DNA of 27,099 nt, from positions 1 through 27,099 of the forward strand of contig CAXIUT010000094.1 of assembly GCA_964035545.1 (NCBI GenBank), in the 5' to 3' direction. The notes beneath the pieces were generated by a model. The model was not told the DNA's origin, made no database searches, and saw nothing but the letters and a program-made list of their open reading frames with translations. Below are positions 818-27,099 of the stretch, in pieces. The translations under genes were made by a program, and so were the position numbers. This DNA comes from Bugula neritina (Eukaryota; Animalia; Bryozoa). Position 1 is the first letter of the stretch; each line of letters begins with the position of its first letter.

Positions 818-1350
818 ATGTCAAAATTGTTTTTTATAATATCATCTTAAATACAAAAGTAGTTTGAATAGGATAGGATGTAACAAAAATAACCTATTAA
901 TGGTATGGCATATGACTAATTAAAAAAGTAGAAAGAATTTGCACTTAAAATAAGTACATTTTAATTAATAAAAGAGCAAACAGACTAAATCAAGATTCTT
1001 CTAAAAAAACTATCTATTCTCAAGTAAGGAGTTCTGATTGAACGTTCCAGAAAAAGTTAACTTGAACATTAGCTTTAAAACGTGAAAAAGAAAATAAGCA
1101 AATACTAAGAAGAAAACAGTTTGAAATAAAAGAAATATTAATCACTAAACACTTAAATTAAACAACTCAAAGATGATCTTATTGTTGAAAGAAATAAAAA
1201 ACATGTATTTTGATTTTAAATCAGAAATTCTACGAGGCTTATATCAACAAAGAAACTTAATTTTCGAATTAAACGCCTGAAAATCAAAACTAAGGTCTTG
1301 GTTTAGGTCTATTTGGATTCAGAAAGTTATTTTCTGGTGATAGTTCGTGA
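818..1350 (+). CDS. Hypothetical coiled-coil protein (~165-170 aa)
   Basis: ATG 818; E/K-rich heptad-like segment (LKEGVLIERSRKSELEHELENVKKK). A 20-nt intron at 1205-1224 removes an in-frame TGA; a possible 21-nt intron lies at 954-974. TGA at 1348-1350. Confidence 0.65.
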
Positions 1351-1371
1351 TTATTCTTTTATAATATTATC

Positions 1372-1949
1372 ATGAAGAAGATATTTATACTTCTAGTTCT
1401 TATACTAATAGCAACAAAAGTAAAAACATAATAAACAATCGAAAACTAGGTTGATTAAACTAGTTAGTTTTATGAAAAAATAAGAACTTGTTGTGTATTA
1501 ATATACAAACAATACTAGGAGGATTACAAAGACACGTATGAAAAAACTTTTTCTTAAAAATTTAGTTAAAACCCATCTAAATATAGAAACAGATTAATAG
1601 TTAAGGCTGTTTAATAATGTGAAGCATAGTACAATACTTCTGAGGTAAAAGATAAATATTTTAGTTCGTAGAGAAATGTGAGACAAATAGAGAATAATAT
1701 TTGCAAAATATGGTCGCAAAAATATAAATTTTTGAAATATCTATTTAATATAAATTATCAGACGATCAGAAATAGATTTTGAAGATATTGGATATTTAAA
1801 ATGGAATTATTTTGTTTGGATATAATCTTAAAAAATTACCTAAATCAGCTAAAGTATATTATCTTATTTTCTATACTCTGATCATAGCTTTTGCCTTGTA
1901 TTCAGGTTTAAAAGAAGTAAAACCTGCTCCTGCAGCTAAATAAGATTGA
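1372..1949 (+). CDS. Hypothetical single-pass membrane protein (signal peptide plus C-terminal TM helix)
   Basis: Begins MKKIFILLVLILIATKVKT (signal-like); 20-nt intron 1645-1664; hydrophobic VYYLIFYTLIIAFALYSGL near the C-terminus; TGA 1947-1949. Confidence 0.75.
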
Positions 1950-2017
1950 TTTCATTTAATTATAGTCAAATTTTGTAATATTAGAATAAAAATATTAAAA
2001 CTATCAGATTCTACTTG

Positions 2018-2974
2018 ATGTCACTAGATAAAGTCATACTTCCGCAAGATGAACTTATCGTCAACCAGGCTCTAGTGCCGTAGAATTTCAAAAAATCTTT
2101 GGAATCTAAAACCTTATTGTTTTAACTTTATTATTTAGAGGTTTTTTATAGGAAAATACGGTTCGTAAGAGATACGATCAGAGGTCAGAATGGGATTAAA
2201 AAAAGAGATGGCATGAATATTCTTAAAAGCAGAAATAAAGACATTTGAATGAGATGTATTTAAAGCAGCAAATTAAAGAAAATACGAAAAATGAATACAT
2301 TCAAGTGTACGATAAAATGATAAATGATCGGAAAGAAAAGGAAATCTAGTAAAAATAAAAAAGATTATGGTTATAAAGAAAATTATTAAATGATGGAAGT
2401 TGGCTTCCAGATATGCACGAACAAAAATAGATTTAAAAACAAAAGAAGTAAACTTTTATTGATTTAGAGTACAATATAGCAGATAACTTGAAAAATGTCT
2501 TAAACAATAAGAAAACAAAAGGCTTGAGGAAGCAATGAGAAGAAAAGAACTATATTAAAAGGCTAAGAATTCAATAGAGGAAATAACTAGTTAAAAATAG
2601 CAACAATTGATAAAAATGGAAAAGGTATATTTATACTTATTTAGAGGAATCCTTATTTGAAGAAAAGAGGAGTGAAATAAACTTTATCATGGAGTCAAGG
2701 TAATGAAGAGCACTAAGAAAGTTATAAAAATACACTAACTCCACGATTTGATCATATGATCAAAATTGAAAATCAAAAATATTTTGATAAGAATCGTCAG
2801 GTTCAAGAATACAAATCCTAAAACTAAAAAAAATATTTTTAAAGACAAAATCCATAGAGATATAGTTCAACTTTGAATCATGAGAGTCCTTCTCCTTATA
2901 ACCCGATAACAAACCCTATTCCGTATAATTATCGTAATCCAAATGTGCTAAGATCAATCTCAAGATTGAATTGA
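2018..2974 (+). CDS. Hypothetical charged coiled-coil protein ending in a YNPITNP motif
   Basis: Open after removing three 20-nt GT-AG introns (2119-2138, 2448-2467, 2625-2644); ends ...SPYNPITNPIPYNYRNPNVLRSISRLN-TGA. Confidence 0.75.
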
Positions 2975-3000
2975 TTTTTATAATAATTTCTATTGATTTG

Positions 3001-3752
3001 ATGAATAATTCAGTCAGCACAGTAACAGGTAAAATTAAAGTGAAAGTGGTTTTCTTAGGTAATCAAAGTGTTGGAAAATCAAGCATTATTGATAAATATG
3101 TTAATGATCGCTTCGAATAAACTGCACATGTACCAATATTGTTAATTAGCCTACAGTTGGAATAGACTTTCTGGCTAAAAATATTCTTTACAAAGCTAAA
3201 AACTATCGATTTCAGCTCTGGGATACGGCAGGGCAGTAGAGATTTAAATCTTTGATACCAGGTTACTTGAGAGATGCTCATTGTGCATTAATTATATTTG
3301 ATGTAAGTAGCAAGTCATCTCTAAATAGTGTTGAGAACTGGCTTAATTTGTATAATGAAAATAAGACAGGTGAAGGATTTACTTTACTGATAGGTAATAA
3401 AGTTGATTTAAAGGATATGAGAGAAGTGACTTCGTAGGAGGGAAAGCAAAAAGCTTAAGAACTAGGTGTGATATATTATGAGGTGAGTGCTAAAACGGGA
3501 TAGAATTTATAAGAATTGTTTAGTAATATTGTATAAATTTGTAGTGAAAAGTCACTTGAAGGAGCAAACTTTTCAATTAAAAATAATAAGTCTTTTATAG
3601 CGAATGGAAATGAGATAATTAAGGAAGATGATAATTAAGGTAAAGTAGAAGAAGAAAATAAAAATAAATAAAATAAAGATAAAGAAAAGGATAGTAAATT
3701 AGTTCTTAAGAATTAGAAAAAATAAGGCAAGGATAATAAAAAGTGCTGTTGA
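3001..3752 (+). CDS. RAB6: Rab6-like small GTPase (243 aa)
   Basis: KVVFLGNQSVGKSS, PTVGIDFLAK, QLWDTAGQ[TAG=E]RFKSLIPGYLRD, GNKVDL, EVSAKTG and a C-terminal CC prenylation motif; 20-nt intron 3130-3149. Confidence 0.93.
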
Positions 3753-3875
3753 TATTAAATATTTTCATAATGAGTAATAATTAAACTAATATAAATTTTG
3801 TTAATTTCTGATAAATAATTCTTACTTACCCGCTCATATCCAAAATATATTTGATCATAATCAAATAAAAAATAA

Positions 3876-4808
3876 ATGTGCGGTCGCATTTTCCAAACTC
3901 TGCCTCTTGCCCGTTTGCTCCAGATAGCAAAAACTAAAAACTGTTCAAATGGCGAACTACATACTTCATCTTATAATGTTTGCCCTACAACATATATTCC
4001 CTGTATCAAAGCCAATCGTTTTTATATTGAAGAAAAAGGATAAGATCAAATTTAGAATGAAGATATGGAGAATGAGGATTGTAGAGAATTGGCCTATATG
4101 AAATGGGGAGCTCATACTAAATATAATATGGTTATCAATGGAAGAGTTTAAGAACTTTTAGATAAAAGAATGTTTGCTAGTATCATTTAAAATAGATGTG
4201 TTGTTATTATGGAAGGATATTTTTAGTGGAATTAAAAAAAAGAACCTTTTAGTCTTAAACCTAAAGATGGAGATCATTTTCTTGTAGCTGGTCTCTATAC
4301 TCCTGAAAATTAAATAGTTATCTTGACTAAAGACGCTACACCTTAACTAGCTAAAGTTCATAGCAGAATGCCAGTGATCCTATCTCATGAATAAGTCAAT
4401 TTATGGATGAATCCTAAAAATACTCGTGATATTAAAAAAGTTATTCATCATTCTTTGCTTAACAAGGATAAACAAGTCTGGAAAAATGTAGGAATAGCTA
4501 AAATAGCTCCTTATGTAAGCGATAAAAGTCAAAAATCTGTTAAATGTTTGATGACTTTTGAAGATTATAAAAAATAACTCGACAAAACTGGATTAATGAA
4601 GTACTGGAAGAAAGCTCCTGTAGTCGAGGCAATTCAAAGACCTAATGAAGCAGATCCAGATTAATAGAGTTCAAATAAAAATCTTAAAAAGCTAAATATT
4701 GATGAGATAGAAAGAGATAGGTAAGCCAAAAAAGAAAATTCTTAAAAAATAATTGGATAAGAAAATATTGAATTAGAATAAAAAAAATAGATGAAATAAT
4801 AATAATGA
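3876..4808 (+). CDS. HMCES: SRAP-domain abasic-site protection protein, HMCES/YedK family (310 aa)
   Basis: N-terminal MCGR (Cys2), SYNVCPT, MKWG, NGRV[TAA]E, RCVVIMEGYF[TAG]W and VHSRMPVIL; the Cys/Glu/His triad is present; no intron. Confidence 0.93.
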
Positions 4809-5397
4809 TCTGTTTGACATTCTTTTGTTATATTTAATTTTTTTTTTTCCTATTTTCGATGTAGTTGCAACAAAAGAAAATGAGTTATTAAACAATATAA
4901 GTGAAAAATACAATATTTATCTATGTTTCTAATAGTTAAACAAGATACCATTTTTCGATAAATAAAAATATGTAAATGATAATGATGATTATCTTGAATA
5001 TTATTTTGAAGATAGATATGACATAAACATGAAAAGTTAATATATTTTTATATCAATAAAGAAAAATAAATGAATATCCTTTCTTTTTAGATCTTATTCT
5101 TTTAATATTTTTTTTATCAATGCATCAAAATGTAATTCCTTGAAAAAAAAAAAAGTAAAGTAAAATATTTAAAAAATATTTAAAATAACAAATATTTTTA
5201 TGATTATTTTTATGATTATTTTCGATAGTTTTTTATCATACATCTTTTAAATGTTGAGAAATAAAAAAAGCTTTATTTGTCAAATAAATGTAAAAATAAG
5301 CATTTAAGATGGTAATAATTAATTTATTTTCTATTGATAAATACTTTGGTGTTTTAAATTTGATATTCTCTTATTATTATAAACAGTTTTTATTTGA

Positions 5398-6554
5398 ATG
5401 AAGTTGATATCAAGGATTTAATATCACTCATATAAAATTACTAAAAATATTTTGCTAAAAACAGTGTAGAAAATCTTCGATAGTTATGAATACAAAGTGT
5501 TTAGACTGACAAAGTCGTATATAGAATATTAAGGATTTTTTTTTTATATTAGTTTAAGTTATTGGAACAATAAAATAAAATTCCTTCTTAAACTTTAAAA
5601 AATTCTTTTGCAAAGTCATACTTTTTGGTTATTCTATGCACTCATCATAAAGATTGAACTATTCTGCTTATTATAAGTTACTATATGGCAAATGTTAATA
5701 TGAGAAAGAATTCTATGTTTAAAATCAATCAATAATATCACTTAAATATTGGTAAAATTAAAGGTAAAAAAGACTATAAATATCATTTTCAAATTGAAGA
5801 TTGATTCTCTTTATTGTAACAGAAATGATTAATAAGTTTAGTGTTCTTTACATGTTATATGATTATAATTATTATTTAAAACCTAAGCTCATGAATTTCA
5901 TCACTGTGGCCCAATATATCTATTATGATAACATTTTAGTCCCACAAATGAATAACTCAAGAACTTCCTCTATCATTTAATGTAAAATCATCTAATATTA
6001 TAGATATGGGAAAAGCTCTTCGAATCAGTCTCTAAAAATACCAAAATGAATTAATTCTTATTAAAAATGACAAAAAAGAAGAAAGTATACCTAAGTAGAG
6101 AGTTTCTGAACTTTAGAAAGAAAAAATACTCTAATAAAGCCCTAAGTAAGAATAAAAGAACAATAAATACAAAAAAAAAATTGAAAAGATAGCAACTTCG
6201 AAGTTCTTTTAGATAAAGTCGAAAAAGAAGTCCAAAAAGTCACCAAAATTCTTACCCAATAAGTCATTGAAGATTTCGAACTCATTAAAGCATCAACAAA
6301 AAAATATCAATAGAAATAGTTCTTCAAGGTTTTATAGAATCAAAAAAGATATAAATCGGTCTAGAAGGTCTGGTTTTCATTTAAAAAGACCGGCTGTAAG
6401 TCTTATATCAACTGCTATTTGTCCTTCTTTATAGATTAAAAAAGAAGTTTTAATAGAAAAGAAGGAGAACTTGTTCAGCCGAAGGGTATTTAACTGGAAT
6501 GAAAAGGTCATAAAAATCAAAGACAAGCGTGAAATAAAGATGCTAAAGTCTTGA
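5398..6554 (+). CDS. Hypothetical protein with basic low-complexity C-terminal half; exon structure uncertain
   Basis: TGA-free K/S-rich frame from about 6006 to 6554. Joining it to ATG 5398 needs an intron-like 19-mer (5534-5552, donor GA), an intron or other event over a TGA near 5796, and a 22-nt intron (5982-6003). Confidence 0.4.
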
Positions 6555-7245
6555 GTTTTAGGAGATTGATCTAATTTATGATTTTGATAAATGATTACGA
6601 TTATTATTGCGTCAAATAAAATATCATAAAAATAAATAGTAGAGGTAAATAAACATGAGAGAATCAAGAAATAACCTTTTATTGAATAAACATCTTCTTT
6701 GTTATTAATTATTATTGATTAAACTCTTTTTAGGATAATGATGCTTTCTTTTTTCAACTTTGAAAATAATCAAAGCAAAAACAAACTTTTGTTGATGGTT
6801 TTACATTATTTGTCTTTTTAAGAGATATCTAACAAGGATAGCAGTGTTCTATCAGCTTAATAGTTTTATTTCTGAAAAAGTAGAACTAAAAAATATCTAC
6901 CACTTTTAAATTTATAAACTCTCCAACAACATACTTATTCTGAAAACAGAAAAATATAGGAATAGTAAAACTATTCTCTAACGACTTAATATTGATGTAA
7001 TTATATATATTTTGATTTAAAGACCTTGCTAAAATCCGAACTATCGATATTATAGACTGAAAAAATCAAAAATAATTCAAATTTAATATCAATAGATAGG
7101 CATCTTGAGGAACCTTCATTCAATCGGTAGAGCATATACGAATCACAGCCAAAAGGCCTCTAAATACTTTCCTTGTTTATGTTTTGAATATTTAAATCAT
7201 CAACTTATAATTTATCAACATTATAACATAACTCTTATATAATTA

Positions 7246-11833: not shown

Positions 11834-14800
11834 ATGTCCTAAGACTCATATAATCCTCAATAATTTCAATAACTAATCACAACTGCAACAACCTACACAA
11901 CTAAAATATAATCTTTTTCAACAAAAATTTCATAATCTTCAATGTACTACTTATCTCATCTAGATATAACCAGCTAAAATGTCTCAGTCAGGCTCATTCT
12001 GTCCTTGCAGACCAATCAATACCAATAATAAAGAAACTTTTTACTATTAGATTCATTAAAGATACAATGCTACTTGCATCTCTTTCATTTATGTTATGTT
12101 TTTAGGTTAAAATCTTCCCTTGGTTATAAAAACTATCCAAATATCTGAAATTAGGCCAGTAAATCAAATTTCAAGAAATAAGTCGTTTTCTCAAAGGAAC
12201 TAAATAACTATCAACTCCATAAACTTCAGTTCGTAACAATTTTATCAATCTTGTTTAGGATTTTATCAAATGGATGGGCACGTATATTCAATAACATCCT
12301 TATTCTAAAATAAAATTTAGATCTGCTTTTAGAATTCTGCTTTAAAGATTACCTTATCTTAAATCAAGTTCTGTAAGTAAACTCAATTTTTTCAAAACTG
12401 ATGATCCCAAAAGATATCAGGCTTATTATTTGTAAAAGTAAAGTGGGTAGCTATATGGAGAAAGAATAACATAATATATTTAAAATACATTTGATAGCAT
12501 TTAAAAGATAAAAAATGATAATAATTTGGATTTATTTGTTCAAACAGGCGATCAGTATATTCCATATTATTTAGATTCGTTATTGATTCGATAATTAGAG
12601 AATATGATATCTTTTTCAATGATATGGATAGAAAGAAAGCTAGTAAAGGTCTTGTTATGATATAAAAATTGAATTAAATCATGAGAAGTGGAGATGTATA
12701 ACTATGTAATAAAGTAAAAAACTAGCTACTGCCTAAAATAGTGCAATTTGTTCTGATGGTAAATCATCATCAAATAATGTACAAAGGTTAAGAGGCAGGA
12801 ATGATAATGGCTAAAATGTTTTACGGCTGGAAAAAGCAATGTTAATTTTATAAACTTCCAAACAAAAGTTATTAATAGGCTATCGATGTTCTTTAAAGAG
12901 ATGGAATTTATATAGCTAATATGAATATCTAAGATAATATTGAGTAAAATTCATCTTTTGGACTTCTTCAATAAATAAATCAAGATAAAATTTCACAACT
13001 TTAACTCAATTAAAAACATAATATCAAGAAAATACAAATGTGTAAATTTATACCAACTTATTAAAGCTATGTCCCAGCTAAATAAGTTTCTAACTCGATG
13101 TTTCGACCCAATGATTCTAACAATTCTTTGGTAAACAAAAGTACAGATAAGAAGATAGGTTTTCTTGAGGCTTATTCCAAAATACCTCAAGTAATACCAC
13201 CTAAAAACACTTCTGAAGTAAAATAAATTCATTTCCAGCATAGTAATCTATCAGATAAATTTAATTACAGTCCTCAATAACAAAATGGCAAACAACTACT
13301 TATTTCATTTAAAAAAACATAAGAGCAATTGAAATTACCAGAAACATCGAATGTGAGATCAAAGGCATCTTTTTTGAAAGGTAGAGATAAAAATTATATT
13401 GATATTATAGAATAGAAATCAGAATATGTCATAAATTCATAAAATTCTAGAAGGTTAAAAGATGAACCAGCAAATGAAGATAGTATAAAAAAATAAGATA
13501 TTATATATTTACAGGAACAATCTAACAAAATATAAAAGGATCAGGCTAGCATAGTATCAGAATATTATCCTTAAATTAAATATTCAGCTAGTTTTATCAA
13601 AAAAAATTCATTTTAGCCTCAGGAAAGTATCAAAGGGAAAAATACCAAGTAAAAAATAAGAGAATTCGAATGAATATAAATATAAATAAAGAAATAGTTA
13701 ATTAGATTCAATAAGGAAAAGTAAACAGTCAATAAAATATAAATCATAGAAATCATCTTCAATTGATATTAATTTTAAATAAAAACAGTAAATTAAAAGT
13801 AAAATATTAAGTGGAAGTGGAATAAGACATACGTTTAAAAGTAGTTCAAAAGATGAGATGGTTAGATCTCCAATATCAAAAATATCTCATTCTAAAAGCA
13901 TTAAATTGATATAGTTTAATTAAGCATAAAAAAAAGGAGAACAAGGGTATGTGCTACCTTCATCTTCTAAAAGTTACCGATCACCAGAAGTAATTAAAGT
14001 ATAAAAAACAATATCTAAACCTAAATTTGGATTTAAAGTATAAAATTAAACAGAAACATAAGAAATATAAAGTCAATATTCTGATTCAAAGGTAGTTCAT
14101 TCGATAAGTAAGTCATAGAGTATATCAATTGATCCTTCTCTTGCTATTTCTGAATCAATTAAATAGATTCCTGATAATTTTGCTGACCTATTAACTGTTA
14201 GAAAATAGAAAATAAGGGTAAATGAGTATGATAATAAAATAAAAGAGTTGTAGACAAAGATATCTAGAATGAAAGATAAAAAAGATAAAATTATACAAGA
14301 AAGTTAATATCAAAGATTAGTAAATAAATAAGATTAAAAAATAAATGCCTATTCCTCTTGAAATATTAGAATAGTAAAATAAAAAATTATTAAAAGTATT
14401 AAAGCCAATTCGAAACCCAATAAAATAAAAGGGATTTACTACTTATTCTAACGAATTTAAAGGCTAGATAATTAATTTATCAATAGTTCCTCTCAAATAA
14501 TAAATAAAGAAACAAATGGTTTACTTAAAATGCCGTTTGTTTCATAATTAATACCTTTAGATTGGTCTTCAAACTAAAAACAAAATAATATCTCTTTATA
14601 TTACTTTTCTAAAATCAATATAATAATTTTATATCACTATTTAAGAAAATTCACTTCAACTTTCGGAAAATATTGATGCAAGAGTGTACAAAATAGATGA
14701 AGGCAAACAAGTTAAATTCAAAACTCAAATAAAAGGTTATCAACTCTTTGGAAACATTTTTTAATTGGCTAAATTAAACATTCTTCTCAAATTAGATAAA

Positions 14801-20280: not shown

Positions 20281-22657
20281 ATGGGTATTCTTTAAAGTTG
20301 TGAAGGAGATCCTGGAATGAAGTTTACTCTTGATTAAAAACTATTTCGAGATTCTCAAGGACCTCGTTATTCATCTGATGATTATTTTTTTAAACCATCG
20401 AATGTTAAATTGTTTGGAGATCTACTTTATAAAAAAGGAAATAAAACTTAATTTGTACTTCAAACATTCTATACTAATAAAGGATCAAAAGTTGCTAACC
20501 AATCTTTGAGAATTTACGATTCTGCTCAATAATTTCTCGAGGAAAAAGGATGCAAAATCAAACTATAAACTCCCGTTTCCGATCCAAATATATTTGGCAA
20601 TCAATTTTTGGTCTGTAAAATGAAAGGTCATCACAATTAGATGACAATCAAGTACGTATCTTTCAACAGATACGAATAGGACAAATTTAAATAGGCGCTA
20701 TTTGAAGTCACTATGCTCCAAAAGAGTTTAACATAAGAAAACAATCGTTATGGTTATGTTTATAATTAAGCTTTTGTAGTTTAATCTGGCCTTCATAAAG
20801 ATAACAAAGACAAATGTTTGATAGTTTTAGGATAAAATGCCTCTGCCTCTCTTTCTGAATTGATTCACTACCGTAAAATGTCTAAATCTCCATGGACAGA
20901 AAGTCAATATACTTCTCTATGCTATAATCTTATTAAATGTGTTCATTAATTACATAAAAAAAAATTAGCTCATAGAGATATTCGTCCTTTTAATTTTGTT
21001 TATAATGCTACTAAAAGAAGTTTTATTTTAGGAGGATTGCAGCATGCTACATCTGTTGAAAGTGATCCTAAAACTGGATATAATCTTTGTGGTGTACCAT
21101 ATTATTTACCTCCAAAACTTATCTAAATTGGAAAACGATAAGATTTTTCTTAATATTATATCTATAGTCCTTATAAAGTTGATATCTATGCTCTTGGAGT
21201 CACTTTATTGAACTGTCTTTTTCTCGATCAATTTACATCTCCTCAAATATTGGCCTAATCTTTGAAAAAATACACTCAAAAATGGAATTTCCTTCACAAA
21301 GTAAAATAAATGATTGGAGAGAATCCACCTCGCTTAGACTAAATTTTAGCTTCAGTAGGTACAAGTGAATCATTTCTCGAGTAACGTGCAAGTATAGAAT
21401 CAATGCGTTATAGAATGAAACCTCAAGATAACTAATTTGTTGGTCGTAAGCAATCAATAGCTTAAAGTTATTATAGTATGTTTATGTATGATCAATGGGT
21501 TAGCTAAATTAATGAAGTAGTCAATTATTATGAAATGAATAAATGTTATATGCAGCTAGGAGATGTCTACAAGCAGATAGCTGATGTTTATCATGAACAT
21601 GATGATACTTAAAGTAAATCTTATGATATTTAGAGGAAATGAAATAGTTTTATGGAAAAGCTTGTTCAACTTATTTGTTTATTAGTCAAGAATGTATAGA
21701 TGAGAATAAAACATAGTAAGCTATAAAATATCTTTAAAAAGGTATTGATTGTAATCGAAAAGGATAAAGAGGATCGCCTAATCAATAACTTGCTTATCTT
21801 CTTAATCGTTTAGCTTTGACTTATCATAAAAAGGGTGATTGCGAAATAGCCAGAGCCTTTCAAGAGTAATCTCTAGATATCATTGCCAAGTATCTTTAAT
21901 ATCTATTCAGAGTTTATGGTACAAATACTCATTATTATGCTTAAATGTTAACTGATTCTGCTAAAATTGAATCTTAATTTCAATAATTCAAACAAGCATA
22001 AAATATGCTAAAAGCAGGACTCAAAATCATGGATAAAATAAAAGACTAAACACCTGAACAACATAGAATAAAAATAAAACTACTTGAAGCATTAGGAACT
22101 AATTATAGATTAAAAGCTCTTGAGAGGAGAGAGAAAAGTGATATTTATCGAAAAAAAGGAGAATAAGCTTTATTAGATGCTCTTTAAATAGCTTAAACTC
22201 ATTAAGGAAACATTAGTCCATTAGTTGGTACCATTTTAATGTCACTTGGGAATATTTATTTCGATAGACGTGATTTTGAAAAAGCAAAAAAGACTTACTA
22301 AAAGTATAATTTATTTTATTAAGATCTCTTATCATTAAACAACATACTCAAGGTAAAAGAGAAACAATTGAAGTAGGAGAGTGTTTGACATTTTTAGCTA
22401 ACTCAGAAAAATGTTTAAAATAACTTGATAAGGCAATCAAGCACTATGATTAAGCGATTGAAGTTTATCGAAGAGCATATGGAAATGATCATAATGAAAA
22501 TACTGCAGTTGCTATAGGAAATCTTGGAATAGTATACAAGTAACTAGGTCATAAAGAGCAAGAAAAAGAATATTTATCTCTTGCAAAAACAATTCTTAAA
22601 GATCTTTTAGGATAACAAAGTCCGGATTATCAATATTTTGATCGTCAAAGTCGTTGA
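20281..22657 (+). CDS. Putatively N-acylated pseudokinase with C-terminal TPR repeats
   Basis: Starts MGILESC. Kinase fold with MTIK, HRDIRPFN, GVPYYLPPK and DIYALGVTLL; DFG is replaced by GLQ. Kinesin-light-chain-type TPRs follow (e.g. TAVAIGNLGIVYKELG). Introns 21614-21633 and 22304-22323 (20 nt), probably also 21890-21910 (21 nt). Confidence 0.85.
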
Positions 22658-23241
22658 AAATGATAATTATATGCAATTAATACTATATTTTTAATAACTT
22701 TTAACCTTTTCTTTACAAATCGAAGGTTTATCTTTGATTTTGAATTTAAAAGTGGGTAATTATTTATATTATCATTCGAACATATGGTCCGAGAGTTAAA
22801 AAGCGATAAATTTTTATTCTAATGAAAGAATTTCCTTCTACTTATCAAAATAAAATTATCTAATGCTATTTTTTGTTCTATATTTTTTTAAATTGAGAAC
22901 TCATCGAAGAATATTGGATAGAACATCTTTAACAAATCAATATTATTTGATTATTTAATCATTAATAAACTAATAACTATTATTCTTTCGACTTCTTTTT
23001 CACTCTACATTAGTAATGAGCTTTTGAACATTCTTTAAAAAATAAAACAACCATAAGTCAAAAATCCGGTCATTCAAAAAAATTCTTCTGAAAGCTTAAT
23101 AACTATATTTTTGAAGAGTTGAAATAATTCTTCGTTAAATTTTTCAAAAACTGATTTGATATAAAACTTACTTATTCATTAGTTTATATTTTAGCTTTTT
23201 TTGATATGAATATTATAATTGTATTCGATTAAAACTCTTCT

Positions 23242-23688
23242 ATGGAAATGCAAGCGCTAAATTCTTCGAAATGCTCTTAAGAAAACCAATTTACTTCTAG
23301 AATGGGTTACTTCTCATTTAGACATGAAATGATGAATATTTTGCCTCCTATGAAAAGAACATCTTAGTATATAGTTCACTTATGGAATTAACTATTAAAC
23401 AATTAAAAAAACACTTAAAAGAGCTAGAGTGATAATATTTCAATGAAATATTCAATTTAGCCTTAAAATTAAAACAATTTTGACTAAATACTTTTGAAGC
23501 CAGCAGAAAACTGTGATAATTTAAATATTCAACAATCTTTAAAATCTTAAATCAAAGAGGAAAAGGTTTTAGACACAAAAATAGAACTAGCATAGGTTAT
23601 TATTTAAGATATATCGAGTTCTACTCCAGAAAGTCGTAAAAAGAAGAACATCAAAAAGTTAATCAAACGTGCATCAACCAGATACTGA
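23242..23688 (+). CDS. Hypothetical protein (148 aa), possible degenerate HMG-box-like segment
   Basis: Open ATG-to-TGA frame. SRMGYFSFRHEMM...SEYIVHLWNELLNNEK loosely resembles HMG-box helices; basic C-terminus. Confidence 0.55.
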
Positions 23689-23744
23689 CCCCAAATTAAA
23701 AGTAATGACCTGATTTTATCAAATTATCAACTATAACAATAATA

Positions 23745-24982
23745 TCAATGATTAACTGAGCCAGGCATCTTCCCTTCTTTGAATCTTGTTGTCAGGGGTT
23801 GGGGTTGGGGTTGGGGTTGGGGTTGGGGTTGGGGTTGGGGTTGGGGTTGGGGTTGGGGTTGGGGTTGGGGTTGGGGATAGCGAGATAGTGATGCCTGACG
23901 AATAGGTCTGCTGGTTAGTGGTGAAGAACTTTGTCCTAGTTCATTATTTATAGTTGATAGTGAAGAGGTGTTTTTTGTTTTTTTTCCTTTAGAAGTAACA
24001 AGTTGTGAGGTAGTTCTTTTATTTTTTCTATCAACAAGAGCAACAAGAGTATCAGGGTTGGTTTAACTTAATTTATTCATCTAAGTATAAGATAAAATAC
24101 ATTAGAATGATGATAATCTTCTAAAAGTTGCATTTTTACATCTACTAAGGCATTTAAAATATTTTATTTTACTTGTTCTTTCATATACTTTGTCTTTATC
24201 TTAAACTCATTAAATATCTTCTGTTAACTATTCTCATTATTCATTTCAAAATGTTTTTTCATAGGTAAATTATGAGAGTTTACCATTTTCTTAGTATATT
24301 GATCAGCAACCTGCAAATCAAGTAACTAACTTCTCAGCTTAAAATAATCTTCAAGACTGGTTCCTGAATACTTATTACGAAAAATTACCTGATTATTCTT
24401 TTTCTAGACATGTCGATCCATCTAATTTAAAACTATTGATTTTTTGTTTTAAAATTATTTTTTAAATTAAGAAAATTCCTCAATCAGTTAATTACATTGA
24501 TTTTTTGCATCAGTTCCACTTGTTTTTGTTTTTCTACGACCTGATCTAGAACGTAATCTTCTTTGCTAAGATTTTTTAAGTTCATCTTTAAGTCCATATT
24601 TCTCCTTATCATTGGATCTTTTAATACGTTCCAATTGCTTGACATCTATTCCTGTAGTATTTTTATAACTTTGCAATAGTTTTTGAACTTGCTCTGAAAA
24701 CTCATATAGTTGTTACTAAAATTTGGTCAGCATATTTTGTTCAATACCTGATAAGTAAGAATCGTTAGGATCATTAATTCTTTTTAATAAGTCTAAAATG
24801 GTTGTAAGGTGATGTTGACAATCTGAAGTTGGATTGTAATTGAGATCTAGAGTACATTTAAGAATTGTTTAACGAATATGTTCATGCAGAATTATGTATA
24901 GTTTAGATAGTTCGCCTACTACCTCTTGAGATTTTTGAGATTTTTAGACAAATTTTCGCCATTATCTTTGAGTGTTTTCCAT
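23745..24982 (-). CDS. Hypothetical coiled-coil protein (405 aa) whose last exon contains a telomere-repeat-encoded (PQ)13P tract
   Basis: Exon 1 (24982-24101) was checked codon by codon and has no TGA; 20-nt GT-AG intron 24100-24081; exon 2 reads ...RPIRQASLSRY(PQ)13PLTTRFKEGKMPGSVNH-TGA (23747-23745). Confidence 0.8.
23795..23876 (+). repeat. Interstitial telomeric tract GGGG(TTGGGG)13
   Basis: Perfect 82-bp array in the same orientation as the right telomere, with unique sequence on both sides. Confidence 0.97.
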
Positions 24983-25118
24983 AATAAATTTAATATTTGT
25001 TATTCAATTAACTATTATAATAGTTCTTAAAATTTTGACTTCATTTCTTTGATTAAAGATAATTTAGTCTTTATTTTCGTTCAATAAAAAAAATAATATT
25101 TATAAAATTAGTAAAAAA

Positions 25119-26762
25119 TCATGCAAAATTGCCTTTTTGATTGAAAGAACTAAAATTTCCAGAACCAAATCCTGGAAAACCTCCAAAGCCTCCAAAATTT
25201 TTAGCCTTTGATGATCCTCTGTTTTTTTTATTTCCATTTGTTCCACCTCTCATTCCTCCGAAATTCGATTAAAATCCTCCCAAATCATCTCCTCCTTGAT
25301 TAAAAAACATAGAAAACAATTGAGAAGGATCTATTCCTTGTCCTCCCATATCTTTTCCATTGAAGGTAAACTTAGTATTTCCACCTCCCATGTTTCCCAT
25401 ATTACTTGAACTGAAATAAGTCCCTTGCTGACCCATATCTTGGAATCCATCAAAACCAGTATCACCATCATATTCCATTTGTCCACAGTCGTATTTCTTT
25501 CTTTTCTCTGGATCAGTTAGTACTCCATGAGCTTCAGCTATGTCTTTAAATTTCTTTGCTGCTTCTTCTTGTTCTATGTCGCTTTTGTTTCTATTTCTGT
25601 CTGGATGGAATTTCAAAGCTAAAGATTTATATGCTTTCTTGATTTATGCATCTGTTGATTTCTTTGTTACTCCTAATATAGCATAGTAATCTTTTTTCTT
25701 GGCTTGTCTTTATTTTTTCTGAGCCTCTTATATTTTAGCTTTTAAGTTTATTTTTGGGTCAAGTTCTTGAATTTTACCATAATCCTGGATAGCTGCAGAG
25801 TATTCAGCTCTTTCCATGTTGAGTTCAGCTCTTCTTACTAAAGATTTCATGTAATTTGGGTCTAGTTCAAGAGATTTATTAAGATCTTGAAGAGCTTTGA
25901 TCTTTTATCCTGTTTTCATATAACATAGAGCTCTGTTGGAATAAATAACTGAGTTAAGTTTTTTATTGTAGGGATCCAAATTAAGAGCTTATGAATATTT
26001 TGCTTCTGCTTCTCTATATTTCTTTTCTTTTATCAATTCGTTTCCTTGTTATTTAAAAACTTAACATCTTTTGGCCTTATTAAGAGCTTTTTGACATTTA
26101 GTATTTTATGGGTCTAATCTCATACCATCAGAAAATAGTTTCTTAGCTTTTGTACTATCGCCATTATATAGTTCGATTATTCCTTTCAAATAGTAAAACT
26201 AAGGAGTATTTTAGTTATGCATTGAGGATAGTAATTGACTTGCTTCAGTAGTTTATCCAGTCTTAGCTAAACATTAAACTTTATTGAGTTTCAATGTTTT
26301 GTTTATTGGTATTTTTGTAACCAAATAGTTGATACAAGAAAGAGCTTAAGAATAATCGTTAGATTTATCTCCTGCAAGATATCGATCGTAGTTAGATTTG
26401 AGAGATTATACTTCTTCAAGTTAGTTATTTGATGTAATATTTTTTTAGATGTTTGCATAGGATTTCATGGCTTCAACAGCTTCTTAGAATTTTAATATAT
26501 TGACACATGCTTGAGACTTTTTTTTGTAAACCTTAGCAAACTGAGGATTCAATCGAAGAGCTATATTACAATCTCTAATGCACTCTTCAAAACGATTCAA
26601 GTTGAAATAGCAAAGAGATCTGTTTGAAAAGAATGAAGGATCTTCATAAACTTCGATAGCTTTGGTATAGTATTGAATAGCTTTGTTGTAGTCTTGCGAT
26701 TTGTAGGCTTGATTTCCTTGATCTTTGTATTTTTGAGCAACACTGTTGTATTAGATATCCAT
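25119..26762 (-). CDS. DNAJC7: DNAJC7/TPR2-like co-chaperone (TPR repeats + J domain + G/F-rich tail, 547 aa)
   Basis: [13 protein letters not shown]...[10 protein letters not shown]...FFSNRSLCY; K[TAA]QGNELIK; [11 protein letters not shown]...DA[TAA][17 protein letters not shown]...[21 protein letters not shown]. Confidence 0.93.
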
Positions 26763-26982
26763 TGTTTTGTTTTATTATACTTGTCAGTTTTTTCTAATTT
26801 GATCTATATAAAATAGAGTTTTCTAGAATACTCTTTTTATTTGTTGATTTCTGATAAAAACAATCAAAATAAAAGTTGTTCTTTTTGTTAAATTTTGATA
26901 AACAAGTATTAGTTAGGTGAGTTTTATTCTTACTAAGTATATTATCAAGATAAGATAATGATATATTTTAAAAACAAAAAGA

Positions 26983-27099
26983 GGGGTTGGGGTTGGGGTT
27001 GGGGTTGGGGTTGGGGTTGGGGTTGGGGTTGGGGTTGGGGTTGGGGTTGGGGTTGGGGTTGGGGTTGGGGTTGGGGTTGGGGTTGGGGTTGGGGTTGGG
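26983..27099 (+). repeat. Right telomere, (TTGGGG)n
   Basis: Perfect G4T2 array running to the 3' end of the window. Confidence 0.98.

Follow-up and report, generated by a model that had tools for sequence, protein, structure and literature searches.

The window analyzed in this work is one whole contig (G000:C103) of 27,099 nt that is capped with C4A2 and G4T2 repeats. The C4A2 repeats at 1–69 and the G4T2 repeats at 26983–27099 identify it as a complete macronuclear chromosome of a ciliate with G4T2 telomeres. A further telomeric tract is found inside the chromosome, and the features that bear on it are listed below.

1–69: left terminal telomere, C4A2 repeats, read from the letters
23155–23685, plus strand: open frame with TGA-only stops and a weak coding signal by codon usage
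23600–23794: proximal flank of the probable alternative end, non-coding by codon usage and subtelomere-like
23745–23794, minus strand: claimed 16-codon C-terminal tail and TGA, coding status unsupported
23795–23876, plus strand: internal G4T2 tract of 82 nt, GGGG(TTGGGG)13, perfect in its letters
23877–24062, minus strand: coding stretch ("exon 2") of the minus-strand gene, by codon usage
24080–24982, minus strand: first exon or main open frame of the minus-strand gene, 301 codons with many in-frame UAA/UAG, by codon usage
25122–26783, minus strand: TPR-DnaJ gene, from its sequence, the neighbor on the segment distal to the probable alternative end
26983–27099: right terminal telomere, G4T2 repeats of 117 nt, read from the letters

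The genetic code of the chromosome can be read from conserved residues. In the Rab motif WDTAGQ-E-RF the invariant Glu of switch II is encoded by an in-frame TAG (3237–3239), and in the DnaJ domain of the minus-strand gene at 25122–26783 the Glu preceding IKKAY is encoded by UAA/UAG. The presence of UAR at a conserved Glu in both proteins points to a peritrich-type nuclear code in which UAR specifies Glu and not Gln, and this agrees with the peritrich lineage that was guessed in the initial annotation. The assembly is stated to contain 216 Mb in 321 contigs. The contigs examined are telomere-capped and only 13–98 kb long, which is small in comparison, so the bulk of the sequence must be in a handful of very large records. 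Do these records come from the germline, the host or a different organism?

The flanks of the tract were scored with a codon-usage model that had been trained on 86 long open frames. The model supports the minus-strand frame from 24062 as far as the tract border at 23877, in a stretch whose frame has no ATG, GTG or TTG. The product of the main open frame at 24080–24982 has the look of a coiled coil, and its in-frame UAA/UAG codons leave stop-free pieces of 50 aa or less. On the other side of the tract, the plus-strand frame at 23155–23685 is, judging from its codons, probably the last exon of a gene that converges on the site. The only Pfam match to the gene with the Pro-Gln repeat is Trypan_PARP, which is sub-threshold (16 bits against a cut-off of 100) and is due to the repeat itself.

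In polarity the internal tract matches the right terminal telomere, with G4T2 on the plus strand after 23794. Chance is excluded as the origin of a perfect 82-nt hexamer array in DNA with 28% G+C. The minus-strand frame enters the tract as SLSRY, reads (PQ)13 P, leaves it as LTTRFKEGKMPGSVNH and ends at a TGA (23745–23747). The initial annotation had described the array as GGGG(TTGGGG)13, translated it as (PQ)13P followed by the TGA stop and noted that the tract resembles the terminal tracts in size; the letters of the assembly bear out the first two points, and the lengths (82 nt vs. 69–148 nt at termini) bear out the third. From these observations it had been proposed that telomerase had extended a broken end at a GGGG seed, that the ends were rejoined and that a protein was thereby rewritten.

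The spacing of the two flanks was compared with that in independent data by aligning Logan contigs from four runs to 22000–26000 of the window (4001 letters). One contig from run X2 (record 9, 4517 nt, depth 11) is about 1% diverged from the window and is therefore not the assembly's own consensus. Its letters 1425–3212 match 22000–23787 of the window and its letters 3314–4517 match 23889–25092. Between these anchors there are 101 nt in the X2 contig and 101 nt in the window (23788–23888). The collinearity on both sides means that the flanks are neighbors in real DNA and have not been brought together by a chimeric join, and the equal spacing means that this relative does not carry an allele that is 78 nt shorter. 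Removal of 13 hexamers from the window does leave TAT CCC CTG ACA, as proposed in the initial annotation, but the independent X2 contig does not have the shorter form and the "clean tract-less allele" encoding YPLT is fictitious. Window positions 23788–23888 were masked as a repeat in the alignment, so that the 101 X2 letters were counted and not read. A de Bruijn contig with k=31 cannot cross an 82-nt perfect period-6 repeat that is shared with all telomeres. On the basis of this behavior of the graph, and not of the letters, the 101 X2 letters should be largely unique sequence of equal length.

The contigs from run X1 break on either side of the site, and contig depth goes from about 99 to about 70, a small drop in a noisy measure. 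Both are weakly compatible with a branch between molecules that end and molecules that continue. The X1 contig ends near the tract, at about 23801 and about 23869, are an exact fit to neither an insertion nor a replacement. A search of the same genome for a second copy without the tract, using 23300–24400, returned the window alone, and a metagenome scan with an exact pattern of the two flanks separated by a 90–110 nt gap gave 0 matches.

Similar tracts are found throughout the assembly. The genome was searched for (G4T2)4GGGG with three non-G bases after it. There were 54 matches, 42 forward and 12 reverse, of which about 35 are clear transitions from telomere to unique sequence inside contigs. 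For the mirror pattern there were 531 forward and 271 reverse matches, although natural ends should feed both orientations equally. Twenty of the internal-tract loci were examined in detail. Their tracts are 42–100 nt long, compared with 69–148 nt for terminal telomeres, and lie deep inside contigs of 13–98 kb. Several contigs have two tracts, and in the examined set the tracts of such contigs are always co-oriented. The 42:12 strand bias and the co-orientation follow the direction of the FASTA record or layout, which points to the assembly process and not to biology. The minority orientation makes up 22% of tracts; if the tracts are replacements, these need to have been flipped later, for example by scaffolding, as is seen in contig C188.

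Two of these loci show what happens to the bases at a tract. In contig C41 (L006) a 77-nt tract interrupts a 22-nt tandem array with the unit tagtcaatgatcttatattcaa. The array halts at unit position 4 and restarts at position 16, and 4 + 77 = 81 = 15 mod 22. The phase is kept, which means that 77 of the array's own bases were replaced, whereas an insertion would restart at position 5; agreement of phase by chance would occur in 1/22 of cases. Contig C188 (L021) is a scaffold in which two telomere-capped chromosomes are joined telomere to telomere across N200 (4072–4440). The regions on either side, 1350–4071 and 4441–7160, are 2.7-kb copies that are 97.5% identical and are thus overlapping chromosome isoforms or alleles that were scaffolded end to end. 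Where one copy carries a C4A2 tract of 70 nt, the other has 71 nt of ordinary unique sequence. The flanks are collinear on both sides, and same-length replacement can here be seen directly. Collinearity with equal spacing is thus observed at the present locus (101 nt and 101 nt) and same-length replacement at two other tracts (the array phase in C41; 70 vs. 71 nt in C188), with a polarity that follows the direction of the contig.

The C41 array occupies 12813–13520 of its contig (708 nt), and its 22-nt unit occurs in two variants (...gatctta... and ...gttatta...). Internal C4A2 tracts border it on either side, which suggests a minisatellite that lies between two alternative left ends.

The junctions of the internal tracts resemble those of genuine chromosome ends. 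The base preceding the telomere is A at 23794, in 18 of the 26 internal junctions and in 5 of 7 terminal ones, and the proximal flank of the 26 internal tracts is usually non-coding while the distal flank is often coding. It is this combination of a junction A and a non-coding proximal flank that makes the internal tracts look like ends. The same properties are found at the present tract. It has the repeat of the species and the polarity of an end, it abuts unique sequence internally, its length and junction are like those of a terminus, and the X2 contig represents a collinear read-through molecule. It also lies outside the coding sequence of the retained side, as 23600–23800 is non-coding and the plus-strand frame ends at 23685.

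The 9-mer AAACCAACC, which forms the core of the chromosome breakage sequence of Tetrahymena, was found 7 times in 216 kb. Four of the 7 occurrences lie no more than 301 nt from a telomeric tract, compared with an expected number of about 0.6. These four are at 24054–24065 of the window (minus strand, TAAACCAACCCT), L003 5251, L016 4661 and L017 5146. The 9-mer is a weak candidate for a breakage signal: the sides and strands are mixed, the sample is small and the 9-mer is itself telomere-like.

Taken together, these results make it highly probable that the tract is a telomere tail that comes from a shorter isoform of the chromosome and was written over 82 genuine bases, and that it marks a real alternative telomere addition site near 23795. 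Some copies of the chromosome would terminate near 23794/23795 in an ordinary telomere some 80 nt long, and others would continue to 27099. The addition site would be at about 23794/23795, or up to a few bases farther right if the initial G and T letters of the tract also belong to the genuine sequence, and would sit between two convergent genes. During assembly, a read from the short isoform may have been chained to a read-through read, and its unaligned telomere tail may have been retained in place of the next 82 genuine nucleotides, one base for another. The contig would then read flank-telomere-flank with unchanged spacing, a structure absent from real molecules. In the arc-length rule of miniasm and hifiasm, an overhang at the end of a read is tolerated and the next offset is computed as if the overhang had aligned. 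Such overhang tolerance in a string-graph layout of the miniasm/hifiasm style is a candidate for the assembler step. It would lead to equal spacing, to a tract with the length of one molecule's telomere and to one polarity per direction of traversal, all three of which are observed; the rule predicts exactly a same-length substitution by an unaligned read end, whereas the majority G-type polarity depends on which read's overhang the program keeps. We infer both the existence of molecules that really end at 23795 and the exact step taken by the assembler. The initial annotation had offered, as its second choice, a site of alternative fragmentation at which ending and read-through molecules were merged in the consensus. 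The evidence favors that part, but the telomere replaces 82 bases and is not added to them.

The alternative chromosome end marked by the tract is probably real and of a known kind, since other ciliates are well known to have alternative telomere addition sites (PMC3558436, PMC6937825, PMC9942806). In Oxytricha trifallax, alternative fragmentation produces nested chromosome isoforms from one locus, at sites that are mostly intergenic (Swart et al. 2013, PMC3558436; Lindblad et al. 2019, PMC6937825). The use of a site is often "directional", in that one of the two products is made, and assemblies of Oxytricha merge isoforms, with multi-telomere contigs noted as a consequence (PMC3558436, PMC6937825). 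The chromosomes described here differ from those of Oxytricha in that they are 13–100 kb long and multi-gene, with a G4T2 telomere and a peritrich code. The Oxytricha studies also masked telomeres, which avoided overwriting (PMC3558436, PMC6937825), whereas here the telomere was most likely written over genuine bases. Blepharisma stoltei, whose macronuclear genome is minichromosomal, has alternative telomere addition sites at which telomere-bearing long reads are found at many internal positions, usually as a minority of the reads (Singh et al. 2023, PMC9942806). These sites were found by read mapping and, unlike the present one, are not embedded in the consensus (PMC9942806).

Could the tract instead be a genuine interstitial telomere? 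In that case a break was healed at a GGGG seed and rejoined, and some molecules have a (PQ)13 insert in the protein. The tract is present in the deposited contig, and it is perfect, in frame and stop-free. However, a hexamer repeat gives no stop codon whichever frame is read, and a replacement of the same length keeps the frame automatically, so the continuity of the frame gives no support for a coding insert. At 23795–23876 insertion and replacement predict the same continuity, and across the 26 tracts it is uninformative because the proximal flanks are mostly non-coding. Interstitial telomeric sequences of vertebrates arise when telomerase acts at repaired breaks and inserts short arrays, with microhomology. 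This is the mechanism that the initial annotation had favored, and it gives true insertions that lengthen the locus. In the present case the length is unchanged, as the X2 contig covers the locus in as many bases as the window, with 101 nt between the flanks and no shortening by 78 nt; the repeat cannot be in the X2 contig, the sister tracts in C41 and C188 are replacements and not insertions, and the 42:12 bias toward one FASTA strand, which the tracts follow, is biologically inexplicable. The 16-codon tail after the tract is unsupported as coding (codon-usage score of 0.7 over 15 codons), and among the runs on record as RNA none contains the minus-strand gene. A genuine insertion is therefore very unlikely and the healing of a break does not stand as the explanation of the tract. 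It is slightly less likely still that a fraction of macronuclear molecules has the tract between its flanks and that the gene is expressed with (PQ)13.

A chimeric join, in which a chromosome ending at 23876 was fused to an unrelated segment (23877–27099) by a chimeric read or a mis-scaffold, would give the order unique-telomere-unique-telomere that resembles head-to-tail chaining, and C188 shows that separate chromosomes have been scaffolded together in this assembly. The join in C188, however, has N200 and a G-tract facing a C-tract, unlike 23795–23876, and the X2 contig is collinear over both flanks, so such a join is highly improbable. The germlines of ciliates have internal telomere-like repeats at the ends of transposons, such as Tetrahymena Tel-1 and Oxytricha TBE, and a repeat of this type at the end of a transposon-like element could have been retained in the macronucleus. 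This origin is the least probable, since the tract is perfect and of telomere length, neither an inverted partner tract nor a repeated element accompanies it (the search with 23300–24400 finds only itself) and the equal spacing in X2 counts against it as well.

If the (PQ)13 reading were true, it would mean that telomerase occasionally rewrites coding sequence in this ciliate. A protein rewritten by telomerase would be striking as biology, but the evidence points to an artefact and the (PQ)13 stretch is most likely a translated artefact and not a real protein. With the telomere tail overwriting genuine bases, the tract in all likelihood hides about 27 real codons of the minus-strand gene or its true stop codon. 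The true continuation and stop of the gene would then lie beneath the 82 overwritten nt or a short way past them. The assembly holds dozens to a few hundred such tracts, and each silently removes 40–100 genuine bases. The ends of neighboring genes are often clipped, and gene models as well as findings of a telomere in an exon need to be corrected. The tracts can also be used as markers of real alternative telomere addition sites. Their number suggests extensive heterogeneity of chromosome isoforms in a ciliate with the peritrich code, which is a known phenomenon in a less-studied lineage.

Two minor features were observed elsewhere in the aligned region. At 22036–22130 of the window, contigs from X1, X2 and X3 (two studies) carry a diverged stretch of the same length for 93 nt, which may be a local allelic or paralogous variant common to the three runs. 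At 25448, inside the Gly-rich part of the DnaJ gene, one X1 contig continues in noisy C4A2-like letters on the plus strand (CAACCCCAACCCCCAACCC...); the polarity is wrong for a right-hand end, and the run-on is possibly an amplification chimera.
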